A stretch of 64,000 nucleotides of DNA. Origin: Dimorphilus gyrociliatus. Its lineage: Eukaryota; Animalia; Annelida. Positions 31,203-42,430 of the stretch are shown here, in pieces. The first letter of the stretch is position 1. Every line of letters begins with the position of its first letter. Location: positions 1,426,001 through 1,490,000 of the forward strand of contig CAJFCJ010000010.1 of assembly GCA_904063045.1 (NCBI GenBank), in the 5' to 3' direction. Both the position numbers and the translations under genes were made by a program. Below the pieces are notes generated by a model. The model was not told the origin of the DNA, did not search any database, and saw only the letters and a program-made list of their open reading frames with translations.

Positions 31203-33243
31203 CTAGGCTTCTTTCAAAGACGATAGTCCGGCTCTCATAATTTCATCTACCAATAAAAGATTGCTGGCTATAACAGTGCTGTAAATAAAAGATTTGAATT
31301 TAAAATTTAGTAATAAACATTATTAACTAGTACATTCAGATTTTTAATACGAATGGGCTTGTTTAGCCAAGCCCTTATTTCACTATGCGCTTAGAGATAG
31401 GCAACAAATCAATAATTTTAAAACTTACCAAGAATTCAATATCTGCCTCTTAACTCGGTAATTGTCATAGATTCCTGCATCGCTAGGTATCAAAGTTTCT
31501 CCGGTCAGTAAATCTAACCCAACATTCCATCCGCCTTTCTCTTGTCCCTCTTGTATTTTTAGAATACTGTCTTGAAGATCCAATCCAGCGTTTTGGGCTA
31601 GGGTCTTTGGTATAACAAGTAGTGCATCAGCGAAGGCCTGTACGCCAAGTCTAGCTCTGCCCTTTACGGAATTCTTGAATTTTACTAAATCTGTGCTAGC
31701 GGCAACTTCAAAAGCTCCAGCACCGGGAACAACACATTTATCCTCTATAGCATTTGTTACGGCTCTTAGACCATCCCGTAGTGCATCCTTAATTTGAACA
31801 ATTGTATGCTTGTTCGGACCCTTCACTAGAAGGGTAACTGATTTAGGTTTCTTGGATGTTTCAACAAAGGTGAATTTCTCTTCTCCCAGTACTACTTCGT
31901 AAACGAGATCGGCGTATCCCAGATTTTCTGGGACAAGATCATCAACAGAATTCATAGCTATTCCTCCACAAGCTAATTGTAATCTTTCCATATTTCGGCG
32001 CTTAGCACGTCTTAAAGCCATTATATTTTCCTTCGCCAACAAGTCAAGAGATGGTGGGTCAATTCCTGAAATATTACAAAATATTACAGACATCTACAAA
32101 TGTTTTTTACAAGTCATTCTTATAAATTTGATGACTCATAACTTATTAGCATAGGATGGGCATACCTTTTTGATTAATGACGACAAATCCTTTGTCATTC
32201 CCGTCGCAGACTTTTCTTTTTAGTTCTATTATTTTCTTTACACGAGCATCGATGAACTCTCTTTCTGCTAATACCAATTTTTCTCGTTCTTCTGCCGATT
32301 TATAAAAGAATCCGCTGTTTACTTCTGACTTTTCGTATTCCAAGGAGACATTACAGGTTAAAATAAAGCAATTTTCCAAACGCTTAGGCATATCTGGATG
32401 ACGGGATCCATGATCCATTACGATACCTTTTACCAAAGTAGTATCCATATCTGTTTTATGTTGCATCGACATAATTTCGACCATAAAAAGATCAATAGGT
32501 GTGTTAGGCTTTTCAATTGCTAAAACAGAATCTACGACATGCTGTAAATAAAGCTCAGCGTTATAATATGAATATGATTATTCTCGTTTTTTTGGTAACT
32601 TACTTCAGTTAGAGAATCAGCAAGAGACTCGTTCAATTTTGTTCTTAAAGATGTTCTAGCAACAGAAATTAAATCTTTGCGATCTACATTGTCTTTCTTC
32701 ATAACGATTTCGTCTAAAAATTCTAGAGCTCTCTTTTTTGCGATGTCAAAACCTTCAGAAACCACTCTAGGATGTAGACCTTCGGCTATATACATTTCAG
32801 CCTGTTTTAGTAATTCGCCAACGATGAGGACGTTCGATGTAGTTCCGTCCCCTGTGATATCGTCTTGTGCTGTAGCAACACGTGCTATCAAGGCGGCGGT
32901 CGGATGTTGAATTTGCTAAAAATACTTAATTGATTAGAACGATCTACCAAGTCAGACAAAAATTTATTATAAAATATTAACCATTTCATGAAGCAAAACA
33001 TTGCCGTCTTTAGTTAATTTAATGTCACCGGCCCCGGAAACAAGCCTGCGAAATTAATAATACAGTCAAAAATAGGTATACATCAAAAACTTATCGATAA
33101 GTTTACATTTTAATTGTTCCTTTCGGCCCGAGATTCGTTCTAAGAACATCCTGAATACCTTTCGCGGCACTTAAATTGACGGCTAAAGCTTGAGAGGCTT
33201 TTACGACCTCAGCATTTGGATTCAATGCTTTCACGGCAGACAT
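31203..33243 (-). CDS. CCT6: T-complex protein 1 subunit zeta (CCT6)
   Basis: [13 protein letters not shown]...[13 protein letters not shown]; [14 protein letters not shown]; [10 protein letters not shown]; VVPGAGAFE; last exon [24 protein letters not shown]. Confidence 0.97.
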
Positions 33244-33823
33244 CTTAGATTCCAGACAGTTCTTTCGTTTCTGTTTCCGGTATGTGGTGAATGGCGCAAA
33301 ATTCAAACCGCAAAGTCACTCTGGAAAATGAAATACTGCAGTTTGCAAGCCAAAAAGAATGAAAATCAGTAACAAGGTATTTTAATTTTCTTTTATCTTG
33401 TAATAAAAAACTTTAGGACTTATTATCCAAGTTAACAAAAAAACTTTCTATTGAAATATTGTAGCAGGAATTTTTCACCTGTTGAACTACACGAAACAGA
33501 TTCGGTCAATTACATCACAAAAGACGATATCTCTATATTCTCTTTTTTTTTTGTTAAAAATATAATGCATCAAATGCAACCTTAATACGAAAAAAAAGAA
33601 AACAAAAACAACAAAATATAATTCAGGCTCTTAATTTATACGTCTTTTGATATTAGCTAGCTTATGAATAGGTGTTTGCTAATTATTCTTTTAATTTAAA
33701 GACATCAAATTTGTTGTTCAAACCTCAAACGATCTGAGAACAGGAGTTTTGTAAGAAGATTTCTTAATTTGTATGCACGTAGCTTGTGAGAAGAGAAAAT
33801 AAAACAAATATACACTATACAAG

Positions 33824-34921
33824 TCAAGAATACGTAGCAACTGGCTGTAAATTTGAGTTTGATAGTCTTCTTGGGGATGGGCATTCAACCTTAATCTTTT
33901 TCAATTTTGGCTCAATTGGAGGTTTGCAAGACAGGGATTTTTTTGCTTTCTCTGGTAAAAACTGAAAAACCTTATAAGTTTCACCGTCTTGTCGATGCAT
34001 TGCGTCTTTAATCTCGACCAAATCACTAACAGAGTTTATTGCACATCGAAAGTTTGCTTTCCATCTCTTATGGTCAGGTTTATCCTTACTTTCATTATAT
34101 TTCCCCGTATGAATAGCCCAAAGTTTAAAAAGTTCTGCATCTCCGTCGACACTAAAACCCTGCCTGGCAGCATGTTTCCACTTAACTCTAAATTTACCAT
34201 TTTCTTTATCCATCCACTGAACCCCTGAAGCGCAATTTAAATCCAGCACCTTTTTTAACCAAGGCCGAAGAGGTAATCTGTCCATCGGTCTGGGTCCACC
34301 GCATTGCATAACGTCTTCCATTTCCCGACGTAACTCATCAGAATCTTGCTTTGGCTTTATTGGAGGTTTTAAGTTGGGACAGGGGCCTAATTTTTTCATT
34401 TTTGGATACTTTGAAGATTTCACAATTTTTCGATTTGATACTCCCTCACTAAGTGACAGCAGAGCCTCGGCTGCTTCTTTTTCGGTATCTGATTCAAAAG
34501 GTGATTTTGGAGTTTGATTTTGAAAAGATGCCAATATTGATGCTGCATTAATTTCAGTTTCGGTAGATTGTTCGATATCTCGTTTTTTAGATCTTACAAA
34601 GCCCTGCTGAGGTAGGACGGATTTGGAATTTGGTGGATATTTAACCATGTTCTTTATATAATCCTTTGCCATCAGTGTGCAAAACTTTTCAGCTTTGGTT
34701 GACAAGTCCAATGGTTCAAGGGACTCTGACTGATCCTGCCGAACTTCCAAAAGCGATCCACCTCCTAATGTCTTTTGGTTACAGAACTGTTTTTTTTGTT
34801 GAATGCAGGGCAATGAACCTTTTGGATTCATAATTGGCGTCGGTATACTAAGTTTTTCCATTTTAGATAGTCCAAATTCCTCAACAACAGTAGGTATTAA
34901 GGATTTGTCGCATGTGTTCAT
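33824..34921 (-). CDS. Interferon regulatory factor (IRF1/2-like DNA-binding domain) with long N-terminal extension
   Basis: Single 365-aa ORF. Residues ~214-322 carry the five-Trp IRF domain (RPWL, QWM, KWKHAA, LWAIHTG, RWKANFRCAINS). Extra upstream exons cannot be excluded (acceptor-like AACAG just before the ATG). Confidence 0.9.
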   Translation of the reverse strand: MNTCDKSLIPTVVEEFGLSKMEKLSIPTPIMNPKGSLPCIQQKKQFCNQKTLGGGSLLEVRQDQSESLEPLDLSTKAEKFCTLMAKDYIKNMVKYPPNSKSVLPQQGFVRSKKRDIEQSTETEINAASILASFQNQTPKSPFESDTEKEAAEALLSLSEGVSNRKIVKSSKYPKMKKLGPCPNLKPPIKPKQDSDELRREMEDVMQCGGPRPMDRLPLRPWLKKVLDLNCASGVQWMDKENGKFRVKWKHAARQGFSVDGDAELFKLWAIHTGKYNESKDKPDHKRWKANFRCAINSVSDLVEIKDAMHRQDGETYKVFQFLPEKAKKSLSCKPPIEPKLKKIKVECPSPRRLSNSNLQPVATYS

Positions 34922-36830
34922 AATGATCTGTTAATGATTAAATATAAAAATTTATTATCATGAAATATTATTGAGGTAAGCTTTTCCATTATCATTCTTT
35001 ACAAATAAAGAATTTGTACTCAAATATGGATAAATTTTTACAACCAACATAAAAAGATCTAATTTATTATTGTAAAACCAATACTAAAGGTTATGTTTGG
35101 TTATATTAAAAAAAAAAAACTTGAATACTTCTTCTTTCCTCTTTAGTCAAATCAGCAAACAAGTGAAAAGAAGAGTAAATATTTTGTTTTTCCTCATGAT
35201 TTTGCAATTTTTGTTAAAATACTTGAAAAAGTCTGTTTTTTTTAATGAATATTTAAGTGATATTGAAATAAAATAAAAAAGATGAAAGTTTTTTTTATAT
35301 AAAAAAAAAGACAACTTAAATTTCTTATAGTTATTTTTATGACAATTATTACATCCTTTTTTATTGCTATTTTATATGAAGTAGTCTTCTCGTTTCCTTT
35401 CTTGACAGCTTTATGTACAGTATTGTAAACGATTCGATTTTGAAAATATACAAAGACCGACACAGACAGACTTTAACCTAATATTTTTGACATGTTCAAT
35501 ATGTTACATTAGAATGTACTACTCATAAAAATTCTATTAATAATCACCTATTTAAACTGTTGACGTTGAGAGAAGGAATGTACTATTAGGCCTAAATAAT
35601 CCGAAAATATAATGTGTTGATGCATACGCTTGGGAGGGGTAAATATAATAGAAAGTATTTATAGTGAAAAAATTTCATCCTTTATCTAATTGAAATAGTG
35701 GCAAGAACATTATTAATATCGCTGAATCATATAAGAAATTGTGGTCAGATTCACTCGGTGCAATAGTTAAAAGCAATAAATTGGATAAATGTCTACACGT
35801 GTTCGTTGCTAATATAAAACATGGCCGTCGCTACTTTCTCTTTGAAAGTGGGTCAAGGAAAATGATTTCAATTATCTCCTTTATCTAGCATGCATCAATA
35901 AATTTTTTACTTGAATTAGATATTTTCCACATAATAATGTGCAATAGACATCCTATTAATGAGTCAGTGCAACTACAAACTTAAATAAAAAGCCATGAAT
36001 TTTTTAATGAGTCAACGAAAGAACGAAGAAGGCAAAAGGGCTAAAAATCGACACTATAGACTTACCAAACTTCCATGCTAAATTTGCATATTTCTTTAGG
36101 AAATCCTCCTGGTCAAATTTTTGTATCAGGTTAATAAATAACCATAGAAAATTTGTTTTCTTCTGTAAAGTTTTATAAAGCGTACTTTTTCTTTCGATTG
36201 CGAATGCGTAGTAATATACGGACTATTTCCATGAAAGCCATGGGAGCGACTATTTTTCAAGACTACTCCTTTGACAATTATAATGGCTGAATAATACAAT
36301 TACTAACAGTGTCAATCATACTAACTATTAAATGAGTTACAAATTTTGTCAAAAGCCCATCTTATCGTCTAAGATAGTTTTAGAAAAATGGGAGAAAAGA
36401 TTAAATAAATAATTATTAATGCTAACAGTCTTACCTTAAATGTATGAGCTCGTGGAATATTGTTGTTTACCGTCAAATCTAGTATCAAGAAAACTTTTGA
36501 ATAATGTAATAAAGCAGAATCGGTAATTATTGGGATCGTATTCTAGTTATTGACCACATTGCTATTAAAATAGTTCCCTATTAAAACGACATCAACTTTT
36601 TCTTTACGTTCTTCTAGTGTTACAAATTAAAAATGGCTGTATTTTATTTATTTTAGTTAGATTTTTTAAAGCATCAATAATATATAATAATTATTTGTTT
36701 GTAGTTCGTTTTTGTATCAAAATGTAAGTTTTATGCTATTTCGATTGGTTAAAAGATATAAAGGAAAAAATATAGAGGAAGCAAGAGTGGGAGGAACTTA
36801 AAAACATAAAAATTGGGGAAGAATAAAACT

Positions 36831-39800
36831 CTAGAGGATTATACAAGCGCGTGAAGCGCCTACCGAGTTTCTTGGGTAAAAGTTCACTGTTTCTACACTA
36901 CTTAGTAATTCCTTCTCTTTTCTGGAAGACAATCGAAAACGACTTGCCGATGATGCTCTGCTGCTTACGAATGGTGGCAAGCCAGTTTCAGTATCAACTC
37001 GATCCCATATTCTCTTGACCGAATTTGGTCCAATATGCTTTATTCTTGTAGGTAGTTCTGACAAGATCTTGTTTGGATCATCATTCAAGGGATCAACTAT
37101 TATATATTCTAATACAGCACCATCTTCTAAGCCAACTAGAATCGTTCTATCATCTTGACACACTTTGATGCATGTTATAGGAGCTACAATGAAAACAAGA
37201 AGAAAGAGAATAAATAGCGTGATTAGAAAGCTAATTCCTAATTAGTTACCTGATGTAGTTATCTTTCCGATAATTGATCCATCAGCTGTTCTTCTTACCC
37301 AAAGTTTATCTTGATTATAAAATATTAAAAGTCGACCGTTATGAGCAAAAGATCTTGGAAGATTCTCATCTACTATCTTTCTTTCAATCAGACCTGTATC
37401 CAAATTTATCACATTGCATTGATCATCAATGCAGTATTGATTATTATTTTCATATAGAACTTTTTCAAGTTGTACTACTGGAGAGAATAAATCGACGATT
37501 ATTCTGAGAGCTATTTCACTGCAAATATCTAATTCCATTAGGCCTAGACATTGATTGTTTTCCCTTTTTTCTATACTGTAGATAAGCGTCACCAGATAGG
37601 GATTGTTGGTGTGTACGTTAAAGTCAACAATTTTCTGTAAGCTGTCATCGTGTTCCCTGAGCCTATCTTCGTCAAACGTCTTTACCTCAAGACTATCCTT
37701 TAAATCTATTACAGTTAGTGATGTTCCTACATAAGTTGCCTGACGTTCATCATAGTTATTTGCGGATAATAAAACGGCAAACTTATCTTCAGATGATAGT
37801 TGCATATCTTTTAGTACGTATTCTGCAATGTTCTCTACATGATCTTCGTCAATTATCTCGTTAGCGTATCTTAATTGAACTGTGTCCTCTTCAAAGTCGC
37901 CAAATTCAATAAGGCAGAATAAACTAGCAGATCGGAAAGTATTGGCTCTTTGGTGAAGGCAGGCAAAAGTATTACTATTTTGTAATGCCTTTACGCTGGC
38001 AGAAGCTTCTCCAATCTCCAAAAGAACTTTTCTCTGTTTAATATCCCAGATCCAATTTGAATCTCCTCTCTCACTACCAGTTAGTGATATTACAGCATAG
38101 TTTCCATCACAACTAATAGCCGCTCCTTTAACAATTCTAGGATGAGTGAAAAGATCAATTAGTCTGCCAGTGTCCATTTCTAGGATTCCTACACTTTCGC
38201 AATCTTCGCTTATCACGAGAGCTGAGCCGCATTTGTTTACTTCTATTGCTTTTATAGGCTTAGTAAGTCGATCTGTCAAAATGACATGGGAACAGGCACT
38301 AGCTAATTTCCACACATGTATAGTATTTGATTTGGCTTGTTGACTTATTAATTGGGCTGCTTCGCTACCGCTTGAATTAGGTGCTAATATCCTGTTGACC
38401 AATCCTATAGGAGTTTGCAAAACTGCGGCTGGTTTCATGGATGGTGACGTTGCTCGAACTGGCCAGAGGAAAATTGTTCTGAAGATTGACGAAACGATAT
38501 AATTGGAATCTGGTGTGAACAAGGCATTCTCAAAACCTAATCTTTCCGCTGTCATGTGCCCAGGTAATTGAAATTCAGTTGGTATATAACTCGGCCTCTC
38601 AATATGTTGAATTTCCCTCTGTGTATCATTATCAAATACAACTAAATGTGAATGAGATTTGATAAAGAAATAATTGTTGTTCGGCGAGACCGTCATATCT
38701 TCGACATCCTCGCCAGATAGTTGTTGATTTACATTAATACTGAACTGAATATCGGCGTTTCCTTCATTGTCCAAAAGAAGAATATAGATTGTGGTTGATT
38801 GTCCATCGCAACATACAAAAGCTTTTTTACAATCCTCTGTAAGGCAAACTAATTTCGGATAACCAGCCTTTTCAGTATCGTAACCAAGCACAACTTGACT
38901 TATTAATTTCATATTTTCGGTATTAAATATACAAATATTAGCGGGTCCATCATTTGTTAATAATAGGTCGGCAGAGGAAAATAGTTGACAAACTGTAGCC
39001 TTACCACTCAGACCTTTTACAGACAACAGTTTCGAAGTTAACAAACTGAAGAAGAGCAAACGACTTGATTCTTTAGTTGCTGCTATACAGCAATGACCAT
39101 TCTGCAGGGATGGTTTAGAGAATTTGCATTTAAAACCTGTTGATGGTCTTGACGGAAATTGGATGTGTCGTTCAGGTACTATCTGACCAATGAAAGACCC
39201 GTTGCTAGCGTCATGTATCTTAATTGATCTATCGTGCTCTTCGTCTATGATAATAATATATTTTCCACATGGTGAACAAAATAATTCACCAACGGAAGTT
39301 TCAACTGTAGCTACTCTCCTACATTCTTTGGCATCTAGAACAAATACTGTAGAGCTTTTATTCGATTTGGCCAGAATATATCTCTCATCGTTAGATGATT
39401 CTTTTTTTAGAGCCTCCAAAACATCAGGTACTTCCGGTAAAGTCACGACTGTTTTGAGAGGCGAACCTGGTACATTGTGAAATGGAGTTACAGGTATAAT
39501 ACCGCAGTCGTCGATGCCTTTCACATCGCATTGATAGATAAGAGACTTAATTTTTGGGTATTCTATACAATGACAAAGTAATCTACCAGTTAGTTCTACC
39601 GCAAGATTAGAAGGATTATTTTCTAAAATGTCAGCAGAATCTCTTAGAGCATGTTCTACAAGTAGGACATCTCTTCCAGATATTAGACTAAAATCATCTA
39701 AGAGTGCATCAAATCCCAAGGCCATGAGTTTACTTCTTAACCAGTCAAAGTTGAAGAGAACGTTATCTTCTAGCTTGTCAATTTGTCCAGCTTCAAAGAG

Positions 39801-42430
39801 ATGTTGAGGTACATTCATTAATTTCCTGATGTTGAAAGAGCCGTTTTCAAATTGTAGTGGTTGGGAAGGTACTAATCTATTGGCTGCTTTTATGCTATTT
39901 CCGTTTTTAATAGGTTTCGAAATATCATGCCATCTTCCTCCAAAGTATTCAGCTAAGGTTAAATGAACAGATTCGGCTATTTCAGGATTTCTTAAGTATC
40001 TGACCTTCGCAGCTTCTCTACTAAGCTCGTGAGCCCATGTCGATACATTTAATCGTTCGCACTGATAGATTCGCAAAAGAGACATTAGGGATAGTTTTAG
40101 TTTTCTCCAAAACACATGTGGAATCCTAGTAGAACCTGATAAAACTGGTGGGCAAACTTCTAAAAGAACTTGATCATCTAAAGAAAGAAGATCATCCATT
40201 TCACAATCAGTTAAACCATGAGAAACTGCTGTGAGATACGATAAAGATTTTGAAACTAAAGCTTCTCCATGCATACCCTCTAAGTGACTGAAGAAAGCTG
40301 CATAAAATGTAGGTACATCTGGTGGAAGTTTATCAATTCCTATTAAACAAGTGGAAGTCCATCTAGCAGCTTCCTCGCTTAACAATTTTATATAACTAGG
40401 TAAAGAGCATTTTTCTAACAGTTTACTTATAATCTCTCTTTGATCATTCTGCAGGATTCTGTTTTTCTCCGAAAGTAAAGCATTTAACATTTTCAAACCG
40501 CTTTCTTTACCAAGCTCTTTCAATTCTAAGAAATTATCAACAGATACATTGTCTGCTAATATTGCATTTTCCCTTAATCCAATTAAAATTTTTACATTTG
40601 AAGCTAAATACTGAGGAATCCATGAAACATTCGAGACGTTTCCAATAATAATCGTGCACGCTTGACCCCTGGGAATTTTAGTTAAAAGTTCGTGAAAATA
40701 ATCAATGATAGCTTGGGAAGGATTTCTTGGTATATCTTCAGTTGGTTGCTCAATGGCTAAAGCTAACTGAATGCATAAGCTATGGATTGTAGAAACAATA
40801 TCTTTGGAATTTGTAGTAAGGCCGACAAATTTAATAATTGTCAAACTTTCTTCATCTAATATCCAATCGGGAATATCTAAGGCAACTTTACTATTAAAGT
40901 ATTGAAATATTCCATTAATATTAAGATATTAAAGGTGTTTCTTAATATAGATTATATATAGTAATATACTGTATATATATGACACAGAACTTATGAATAT
41001 TATTAATTAGTTTGTCTCTTAATGGAATACCTCAATAATGAGTTTTTACCAACTCCGCTGGGTCCATAAACGTAAAACGGAGTGTTAGAATCACTAAATA
41101 AATATTTTTTAACAGTGTTCAATTCTTGCTGACGTTCGTTGAAACTACACCAAAGTCTTTTACAATAAGACCACTGGGTGTTCATTTCAATTAAGAATGG
41201 AATAAACCTAATAGATCGATTGGGAGCACTCTGGTCAATTAAACGTTCCATCTCGGATGTAAACTTATCGGAAAATTCTTTTAAATAGTCTTTATGCAGA
41301 TCTGGGCAAATACCGTTATTGAATTTCCATAAAACTTGAAATTTATGGATATTTTCGAGCGGCAGCCAAGATTCTAATTTGCATTCTAGCTCTTCTAGAC
41401 GTCTTCTCTCTTCGTGATCGAAAAATATATCACCAGTTCTTTCATCTTGTATAATATCGGCAAAAATCGATGCTCTGTCGGCGTCAAGATTATTCTTCAT
41501 ATCTGTAATTGTCCTTTTGAATATTAAACATTGCTGTTTAGGCTTTTCAGAATGTAAAATTCCATCATAAATCTCCCGTTCAAACTCGGACACTGATAAC
41601 TCATTCTTTGTTTTTATGTCAATTTGTTCATTCTTTAGGAGCAGGTCAAGACCTGTTGATATGAGTTTGCATATCTCTTTAGACTTTTCAGCAGAATCAT
41701 TTTGATGTTCGGATGGAATACTAAGGACACAACAAGGTGGTATAGAATTCGAATCGATTCTATACCACGATTTTAATAGACCAGCATTTCTAGTACTCCT
41801 GCCTTTGACGGATTTTAATGCAGAACTAATTAGCCTCATAAGGTCTGCAGGTATTCTTCTCGGTGGTAGTTTATCACCATATTTCTGGCCTACGACAACC
41901 TATAAATGGCAATATTGTTGGATTAGTTTTTTTTGACAGTCAATTGTTAAAGAAAGAAAATCTTTGATGACTTTACCACAAAATATGGTCCTAAACTGTT
42001 CAATTGACATTCTCCTAATTCAAAAGAATTTAAAGTGGAATAATCGCAATCGTTTATCGATAATCCCCATTTTAAGTCTATAATCTGTTAAGAAACATGC
42101 ATTAAAAAGATCCAAAGAACATTTAAAATACAACACTAAATTCTAGCCCATATTTCTGTCTTGTATATTCTCTTAATTTAGGGTAAACATTTTCAACCAA
42201 ATAATTCCGTTCAACAATTGAATCTATTGAATGAAATATTGAATGAAAAGGATGATCCTCATTCAAGTAATGAAAATTGTAGATCGTATTAAAAGAGATT
42301 ATAATTAAAATGTCAACTTACCCTCTCCTTTAGAACTTAAATAAACTCTTATAACGTCTGTTGGTGGTTCAGAAAGGGTGCCGGGATCAAAATTTCCGGA
42401 TAACAATGCTCTAATCTCTTTTTCCCCCAT
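36831..42430 (-). CDS. NACHT and WD40 repeat protein (NWD1/NWD2-like STAND protein with DUF4062-like N-terminus)
   Basis: MGEKEIRALLSGNF...DVIRVYLSS; ERNYLVENVYPKLREYTRQKYGLEF|IIDLKWG (NWD/DUF4062-like). P-loop GPSGVGKNSLLSKVA across the 41017-40891 intron. NWD-like helical region (LTDCEMDDLLSLDD, FNIRKL, FNFDWL) and a long beta-propeller-like C-terminus ending RACIIL*. Confidence 0.85.

Follow-up and report, generated by a model that had tools for sequence, protein, structure and literature searches.

A late DNA-binding domain and a lineage-specific N-terminus with candidate co-repressor motifs in an IRF1/2-type protein of the annelid Dimorphilus gyrociliatus

The window analyzed here, a 64,000-nucleotide (nt) stretch of the genome of the annelid Dimorphilus gyrociliatus (assembly GCA_904063045.1, contig CAJFCJ010000010.1, positions 1,426,001 to 1,490,000), encodes on its minus strand a 365-residue member of the interferon regulatory factor (IRF) family in which the DNA-binding domain (DBD) stands late in the protein, preceded by 210 residues and followed by 42. 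The gene is genuine, expressed and conserved, and we regard it as practically certain that the late-DBD layout is real. IRFs are otherwise a textbook case of a fixed layout in which the regulatory domain comes after the DBD. The regulatory part of the worm protein appears to be a new disordered region carrying two co-repressor-type motifs, and the explanation of the whole towards which we lean, though with little more than balanced confidence, is that a genuine IRF1/2-type gene gained an N-terminal region and would act as a co-repressor-recruiting repressor.

Results

A two-exon gene with a single coding exon

The open reading frame (ORF) is present in the ORF list exactly as the initial annotation described it (33824..34921, minus strand, 365 residues, ATG start) and lies in AT-rich DNA (~32% G+C over the whole window). 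The structure of the transcript was derived from spliced transcript contigs, not raw reads, of a public run that matches the window without differences (X3). One of these contigs, record 11, is unbroken over 34927-33106, spanning the whole ORF. The gene consists of two exons, a non-coding exon 1 and a single coding exon, separated by a 1.1-kb intron in the 5' untranslated region (UTR) (Table 1). This intron, with the donor TTTG/GTAAGT and the acceptor ttaacag/ATCATTATG, greatly exceeds in length those of the genes on either side (61-66 nt in the same X3 table). Exons 1 and 2 were translated separately: in the reading frame that the main ORF uses, the end of exon 1 reads RNMQI*HGSL and the start of exon 2 reads IIMNTCDK. 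The spliced mRNA thus contains an in-frame TAG five codons ahead of the junction, so that the long ORF has its first AUG, the start codon, at 34921, with an A at -3. Two mini upstream ORFs (uORFs) are located in exon 1.

Table 1. Features of the IRF gene and its product, with window coordinates, listed in the direction of transcription
Feature	Residues	Window position	Strand	Evidence or remark
Non-coding island alignable between the two species, comprising putative promoter, exon 1 and the initial 270 nt of intron 1		35794..36257 (L001 6833-7297)	-	interspecies alignment
Exon 1, 3' end (5' UTR)		36066..36095	-	X3 spliced contig record 11, joined to 34927
Intron 1, in 5' UTR, 1138 nt, GT..AG		34928..36065	-	X3 joint (CT..AC on plus strand)
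Exon 2, acceptor to stop codon		33824..34927	-	X3 record 11; coding sequence 34921-33824, 3' UTR below 33824
N-terminal region, lineage-specific, predicted disordered, purifying selection	1-210	34292..34921	-	dN/dS, searches, AlphaFold2
PLDLS, candidate CtBP-docking motif	70-74	34700..34714	-	invariant in ortholog
AASILASF, weaker copy of AAxxLxS-hydrophobic pattern	126-133	34523..34546	-	ortholog AASVLVSL
Most conserved N-terminal block	141-210	34292..34501	-	basic KYPKMKK..KPPIKPK stretch; predicted helix at residues 194-205
EAAEALLSLS, candidate TIEG/KLF-type Sin3-interaction helix	149-158	34448..34477	-	ortholog DAVEALLSLS
IRF DBD, IRF1/2 type	211-323	33953..34291	-	Pfam, PDB alignment, AlphaFold2, Foldseek
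Recognition helix alpha3 (KRWKANFRCAINS)	284-297	34031..34072	-	AlphaFold2 helix; 80-sequence alignment
C-terminal tail, short, basic, predicted disordered	324-365	33827..33952	-	pLDDT 54-76, no secondary structure

The N-terminal region is coding and under purifying selection

An ortholog from a second species (P0002, 373 residues) was found in the Logan assemblies of three runs. It is 79-84% identical to the worm protein over the full length, begins with the same initial Met and differs by four indels, all in frame and all within residues 79-140. At the gene level, the ortholog keeps the exon-1 sequence with both mini-uORFs, the GTAAGT donor and the acceptor, and its genomic contig (14 kb) is collinear with the window, with an NWD1-like STAND gene, the IRF and a CCT chaperonin.

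The 210 residues ahead of the DBD are protein-coding and evolve under purifying selection. The ratio of nonsynonymous to synonymous substitutions (dN/dS), calculated by the Nei-Gojobori method from two sequences, the worm gene and P0002, was 0.13 for residues 1-210 (dS 1.19). Within this region it was 0.115 for residues 1-78, 0.32 for residues 79-140, the least constrained segment, and 0.04 (0.042) for residues 141-210, compared with 0.009 for the DBD and 0.10 for the C-terminal tail; dS was ~1.0-2.0 over these segments. Furthermore, contigs from a marine metatranscriptome (X1) represent a third haplotype, all 8 coding-sequence differences of which are synonymous, 4 of them in codons 187-209. 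The chance of 210 open codons at the local composition (stop-codon frequency 0.075) is ~8e-8.

The long layout, as initially annotated, is therefore no start-codon artefact: an in-frame stop precedes the ORF in the spliced mRNA and the N-terminus is under selection. Translation starting just before the DBD is very unlikely in view of the transcript, the ortholog, selection and the chance estimate. Accordingly, we give very little credence to a main product that would be a short DBD-only protein made from an internal AUG (M201, M205 or M213), with the upstream ORF untranslated or minor. Methionines do stand just before the DBD, the alignment with IRF-2 starts at residue 212, and the two mini-uORFs in the 5' UTR could modulate scanning. 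However, there are eight main-frame AUGs before the DBD (M1 to M213, M1 included), the first with its A at -3, and neither the chance of so long an open frame nor the low dN/dS at saturated dS, with every indel in frame, fits an untranslated leader. A minor isoform with an internal start may exist beside the full-length product.

An artefact, whether a pseudogene, an assembly chimera or a transcript fused with the NWD1-like or CCT neighbour, would account for the fact that the transcript contigs of these three same-strand genes touch, but it is more improbable still. The same ORF and the same neighbours occur in independent assemblies of the second species from three runs, and purifying selection is strong. 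In addition, an in-frame stop stands between exon 1 and the ORF, a stop codon and ~0.5 kb lie ahead of the CCT gene, and operons and trans-splicing have been excluded in this species by the genome paper (PMC7854359).

An intact IRF1/2-type DNA-binding domain late in the protein

The protein is a member of the IRF family by its Pfam match, five-tryptophan repeat, recognition residues and fold. The Pfam IRF profile (PF00605) matched residues 218-321 over its positions 2-104 of 105 (E=1.1e-32), scoring 112.9 bits where the curated threshold is 27, and the IRF-2 and IRF-1 DBDs in the PDB aligned, from their residue 1-2 onwards, to residues 212-323 with E about 1e-34. The domain shares 46% identity with vertebrate IRF-2, and its nearest relatives are the DBDs of vertebrate IRF1/IRF2 and of oyster IRF1-like proteins, the names IRF1 or IRF2 being those given by their sources. 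In an alignment of 80 IRF sequences, the five tryptophans (W221, W236, W248, W268 and W287) and H250 all fall on invariant or near-invariant columns. The recognition helix, KRWKANFRCAINS, aligns with the IRF-2 helix KTWKANFRCAMNS; K288, N290, F291, R292 and A294 are invariant in the 80-sequence alignment, and C293, N296 and S297 near-invariant. The AlphaFold2 model built from the same alignment has a predicted local distance difference test score (pLDDT) above 90 over residues 215-325, and the best Foldseek match of the model is the IRF-2/DNA complex 2IRF (template modelling (TM) score 0.93, root-mean-square deviation 1.7 A), consistent with the winged helix-turn-helix IRF fold.

Thus, the intact five-tryptophan domain with the KANFRCAINS helix that had been noticed late in the protein is indeed there, with its characteristic residues on conserved columns. 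The claim that the approximately 40 residues after it are too few for an IRF association domain (IAD) also agrees with our data: the tail has 42 residues, and no IRF-3/IAD1 (PF10401) match was found in the protein with Pfam. The absence of IAD2, the corresponding domain of IRF1/2, was judged from the length of the tail alone, the libraries holding no IAD2 profile.

A 20-nt direct repeat (18/20 identical) at 34350-34369 and 33906-33925, with copies 444 nt apart and in frame, brackets the DBD. Its copies encode KPPIKPK and KPPIEPK; in the ortholog, where they read KPPMKPK and KPSAEPK, the likeness is weaker. The repeat may be due to chance, represent a repeated basic/Pro motif or be a trace of DBD insertion.

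The N-terminal region is an orphan and predicted to be disordered

A HMMER scan of 1.84 billion representatives with the worm protein yielded 1186 matches, the best 150 of which were used in our analyses. In each of these 150 matches the best-scoring stretch was confined to query residues 194-363, which comprise the DBD and flanking sequence; relatives of the N-terminus alone weaker than E ~1e-22 would fall outside this set. A word-index search with residues 1-210 alone recovered only the protein itself and P0002. In the ESM Atlas, the N-terminus had no feature matches and its structural TM scores were all below 0.3, at the level of noise, and BLASTP detected no similarity between the N-terminus and the proteins of Owenia and Pecten with internal DBDs described below.

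In the AlphaFold2 model from the 80-sequence alignment, residues 1-190 have a pLDDT of 41-56 and no secondary structure, and one helix (residues 194-205) precedes the DBD; a model from a two-sequence alignment had a mean pLDDT of 36 and gives no more than a weak hint of a helix at residues 147-155. On this evidence, the N-terminus is specific to the lineage and predicted to be intrinsically disordered, with islands of conservation. Short linear motifs typically reside in regions of this kind.

The layout is rare among IRF-family proteins

To assess how unusual the layout is, we located the DBD in 159 retrieved IRF-family proteins, a survey limited to the best 150 of the 1186 matches. The DBD started at a median residue of 9 (75th percentile 39, 90th percentile 93), and 13 proteins had a start at 90-122; the start of the worm DBD at residue 211 of 365 departs from the canonical N-terminal position in the family. 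A DBD start above residue 60 combined with a tail of under 60 residues was found only in the worm protein and its ortholog among the 159.

Internal IRF domains nevertheless occur in several long predicted proteins. A 1176-residue protein of Owenia fusiformis (CAH1797375.1, P0015) has tandem DBDs at 430-678, and one of Pecten maximus with 1895 residues (XP_033725161.1, P0083) combines an IRF domain at 322-422 with C2H2 fingers. In the sturgeon Acipenser ruthenus, a 1797-residue protein (XP_058871454.1, P0014) carries five IRF DBDs followed by FIIND, UPA and CARD; IRF domains are here integrated into a layout of the NLRP1/CARD8 type. Another protein with a DBD away from the N-terminus, a frog model (925 residues, DBDs at 3-110 and 517-626), looks like two fused IRF3 genes. 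No sequence in common with the worm N-terminus is seen in any of these proteins. Literature searches, including phrase searches for 'C-terminal IRF domain', returned no description of a C-terminal IRF DBD, and a comparative survey describes the IRF family as lacking diversity of domain architecture (PMC8662601). The initial statement that the layout is not known from described IRFs therefore stands for small IRFs, none of which shares it among the 159 proteins or in the literature, but not for the internal position of the DBD as such, given the Owenia and Pecten proteins. In this survey and literature the layout is rare and undescribed for a small IRF, whereas an IRF domain that is not N-terminal is not unique among spiralian gene models.

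Two candidate co-repressor motifs in the N-terminus

Both motifs that had been pointed out in the N-terminal region, as well as a weaker third one, lie where the initial annotation placed them. PLDLS is part of a 26-residue block, TLGGGSLLEVRQxQSxSLEPLDLSxK, with 23 of 26 positions identical between the two species, and the site is predicted to be disordered (pLDDT about 50, no secondary structure in the AlphaFold2 model). It thus displays what is looked for in the PxDLS class, a motif in a disordered region that is kept in the ortholog. In composition-preserving shuffles of the sequence, exact PLDLS appeared in 0.1% and P.DLS in 1.2%. A complex of CtBP1, HDAC1/2 and IRF1 has been reported, but no PxDLS motif in IRF1 is described there (PMC6643137).

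The second motif is contained in EKEAAEALLSLS (residues 147-158, 34448-34483). The Sin3A-interacting consensus of TIEG1-3 is EAVEAL, and in Drosophila Cabut repression depends on an AAEVAL element (PMC3281117). EAAEAL, which reads DAVEAL in the ortholog, agrees with the core of this EAVEAL-type Sin3-interaction domain (SID) and is also similar to AAEVAL, in line with the likeness of EA(A/V)ExLxxxS to the KLF9/10/11 Sin3-interaction helix proposed initially. EA[AV]EAL was present in 1.5e-5 of the shuffles and in 0 of 166 other retrieved IRF-family proteins, and P.DLS together with [ED]A[AV]EAL in 5e-6 of the shuffles. Judging from these frequencies, joint occurrence by chance is unlikely, even when post-hoc choice of the motifs is allowed for. 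A literature search for SID sequences of KLF proteins gave nothing but typographical matches (such as 'reaveal'), and a more extended resemblance to these proteins, with an ending of the ...LVSMS type, does not form part of our evidence. The weaker copy, within EINAASILASF (residues 123-133), falls in the least constrained segment, residues 79-140.

Repression as a proposed function

In the mechanism that we propose, the DBD would bind GAAA-core sites of the IRF/interferon-stimulated response element (ISRE) type as IRF-1 and IRF-2 do, since all conserved contact residues are kept, and short linear motifs would make the disordered N-terminus a docking platform, with CtBP recruited by PLDLS and Sin3/HDAC by the putative EA(A/V)EAL helix. 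The protein would then be dedicated to repression or attenuation at IRF sites and would correspond in function to vertebrate IRF-2, although independently evolved. On the evidence of its motifs, the protein is probably a lineage-specific repressor; to repression by way of one or both of the motifs we give even odds. The fullest version, a dinophilid-specific, intron-less IRF1/2-type gene whose new N-terminus recruits both CtBP and Sin3, making the product a dedicated repressor with a C-terminal DBD, is tentative.

Several points weigh against repression through these motifs or, more broadly, against our account of the gene. The EAAEAL segment forms a helix (residues 147-155, pLDDT about 45) in the two-sequence model but none in the 80-sequence model. 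Conservation of the motifs is judged from two orthologous sequences, and motif matches by themselves are poor predictors. The survey of layouts, with its 159 proteins, is limited to the best 150 of 1186 matches, and the NWD1-like contigs that reach the exon-1 donor are possibly read-through transcripts.

As the main alternative, the same N-terminus might serve activation or respond to signals, as an acidic/hydrophobic activation helix bearing phosphorylation sites would, and PLDLS and EAAEAL would then not be working docking sites. We consider this rather unlikely, although it has points in its favour: many activation motifs are acidic and hydrophobic, as is the conserved block FESDTEKEAAEALLSLSEG, and the nearest relatives of the DBD are of the IRF1 type, which are mostly activators. 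KLF-type SIDs can, moreover, overlap activation functions, as does the SID of KLF13 with an activation domain according to the Cabut paper (PMC3281117). What tells against an activation region is the presence of two independent co-repressor-type motifs, each conserved and rare, with the low joint frequency in shuffles given above. The exact PLDLS followed by x-K, which we take to resemble an E1A-type site, counts in the same direction.

If repression by this protein is borne out, a conserved and expressed IRF of opposite domain order would illustrate how the addition of short docking motifs turns a DNA-binding module of the activator type into a repressor. In an animal that lacks interferon, a 'brake' like IRF-2 would then have been invented independently, and the protein would be the first functional IRF to have the DBD at its C-terminal end. 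The gene could also serve as a compact, testable way into the negative control of IRF/ISRE-type sites in spiralian innate immunity. The scope of these implications is that of one lineage-specific gene, the suggested function of which is read from motifs.

Origin of the layout

The initial annotation attributed the inverted architecture to domain rearrangement. This explanation is not borne out: no second domain was found with Pfam, HMMER, the ESM Atlas or AlphaFold2. We rejected a domain swap because matches were obtained for the DBD alone and none to IRF-3/IAD, and because the N-terminus is an orphan and the C-terminus is short. The IRF gene of Lamellibrachia has 9 coding exons, with an intron within the DBD, and deuterostome IRFs also divide the DBD among exons (PMC2885996). 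The nearest DBD relatives, vertebrate IRF1/IRF2 and the oyster IRF1-like proteins, likewise come from multi-exon genes in which an intron interrupts the DBD. In the worm, the whole coding sequence is contained in one exon behind the 5' UTR intron. Most likely, the layout arose by gain of an orphan N-terminus and shortening of the C-terminus in a gene with an intronless coding sequence, rather than by a domain swap. In this scenario, the N-terminal coding region would be newly gained, the C-terminal regulatory region would have been lost or shortened, and the gene copy, possibly a retrocopy, would also have lost all coding introns.

Regulatory context and neighbouring genes

The conserved island around exon 1 (73% over 472 nt) is the sole non-coding stretch in the IRF gene interval that could be aligned between the two species. 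It holds perfectly identical blocks despite a dS above 1. An octamer-like ATGCAAAT in the island overlaps a conserved mini-uORF, and the island also contains two TGACTCA (AP-1-like) sites, a CACGTG E-box, a TGACCC half-site and GAAA-rich stretches. The GAAA-rich conserved blocks of the promoter and intron were considered as ISREs and rejected, as none fits GAAANNGAAA. A scan of the exon-1 region for sigma-70 promoters and terminators was set aside as irrelevant to a eukaryote. Regulatory introns are larger than others in D. gyrociliatus (PMC7854359), a remark with which the position of a conserved island at the start of the long intron 1 is in keeping.

Upstream of the IRF lies a STAND-type gene (37242-40844 and 41003-41839, minus strand; L001 933-5761) that encodes ATPase_2, an NWD1 winged-helix domain and WD40 beta-propellers and has a 1200-residue exon; it adjoins the IRF in the second species as well. 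An NWD1-like contig ends exactly at the donor of IRF exon 1 (36066), an unspliced contig covers 35314-36095, and one contig comprises the IRF coding exon, a 0.5-kb spacer, CCT exon 1 and spliced CCT exons (window 32400-37300). Given that the genome paper reports neither operons nor trans-splicing (PMC7854359), we attribute the abutting contigs to UTRs that overlap or to read-through, the genome being very compact. Marine (X1) and coral (X2) metatranscriptomes contain IRF and CCT contigs 95-100% identical to the window (32400-34440), so that the worm or a close relative was present in those environmental or aquarium samples.

Comparison with known systems

IRF-2 is the classical repressor of the IRF family at IRF sites. 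Like vertebrate IRF-2 and IRF-1, the worm protein has a DBD of the same type, with the five tryptophans and the R-C-N-S recognition residues kept. In the vertebrate proteins, however, the DBD extends from residue 2 and is followed by a regulatory region of more than 200 residues, whereas the order is reversed in the worm, with its 42-residue tail, and outside the DBD there is no sequence similarity. The genes differ as well: the DBD of vertebrate IRF genes is spread over several exons, unlike the single-exon coding sequence of the worm.

Among invertebrates, the closest DBDs (43-50% identity) belong to the spiralian IRF1-like proteins of Saccostrea/Crassostrea (P0004 and P0007), Lamellibrachia (P0012) and Batillaria (P0013), which, at 377-428 residues, are also close to the worm protein in overall size. 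In contrast to the latter, their DBD starts at residues 24-77 and is followed by 200-250 residues, and none of them carries PxDLS or EA[AV]EAL. The long Owenia and Pecten proteins, which are uncharacterised gene models, share with the worm protein an IRF DBD that is not N-terminal, but about 500 to 1470 residues follow it, and they have tandem DBDs (Owenia) or C2H2 fingers (Pecten). Finally, the likeness to the SIDs of TIEG/KLF10-11 and Cabut and to the PxDLS sites of the E1A/ZEB type is confined to the level of motifs, these proteins belonging to DNA-binding families unrelated to IRF.

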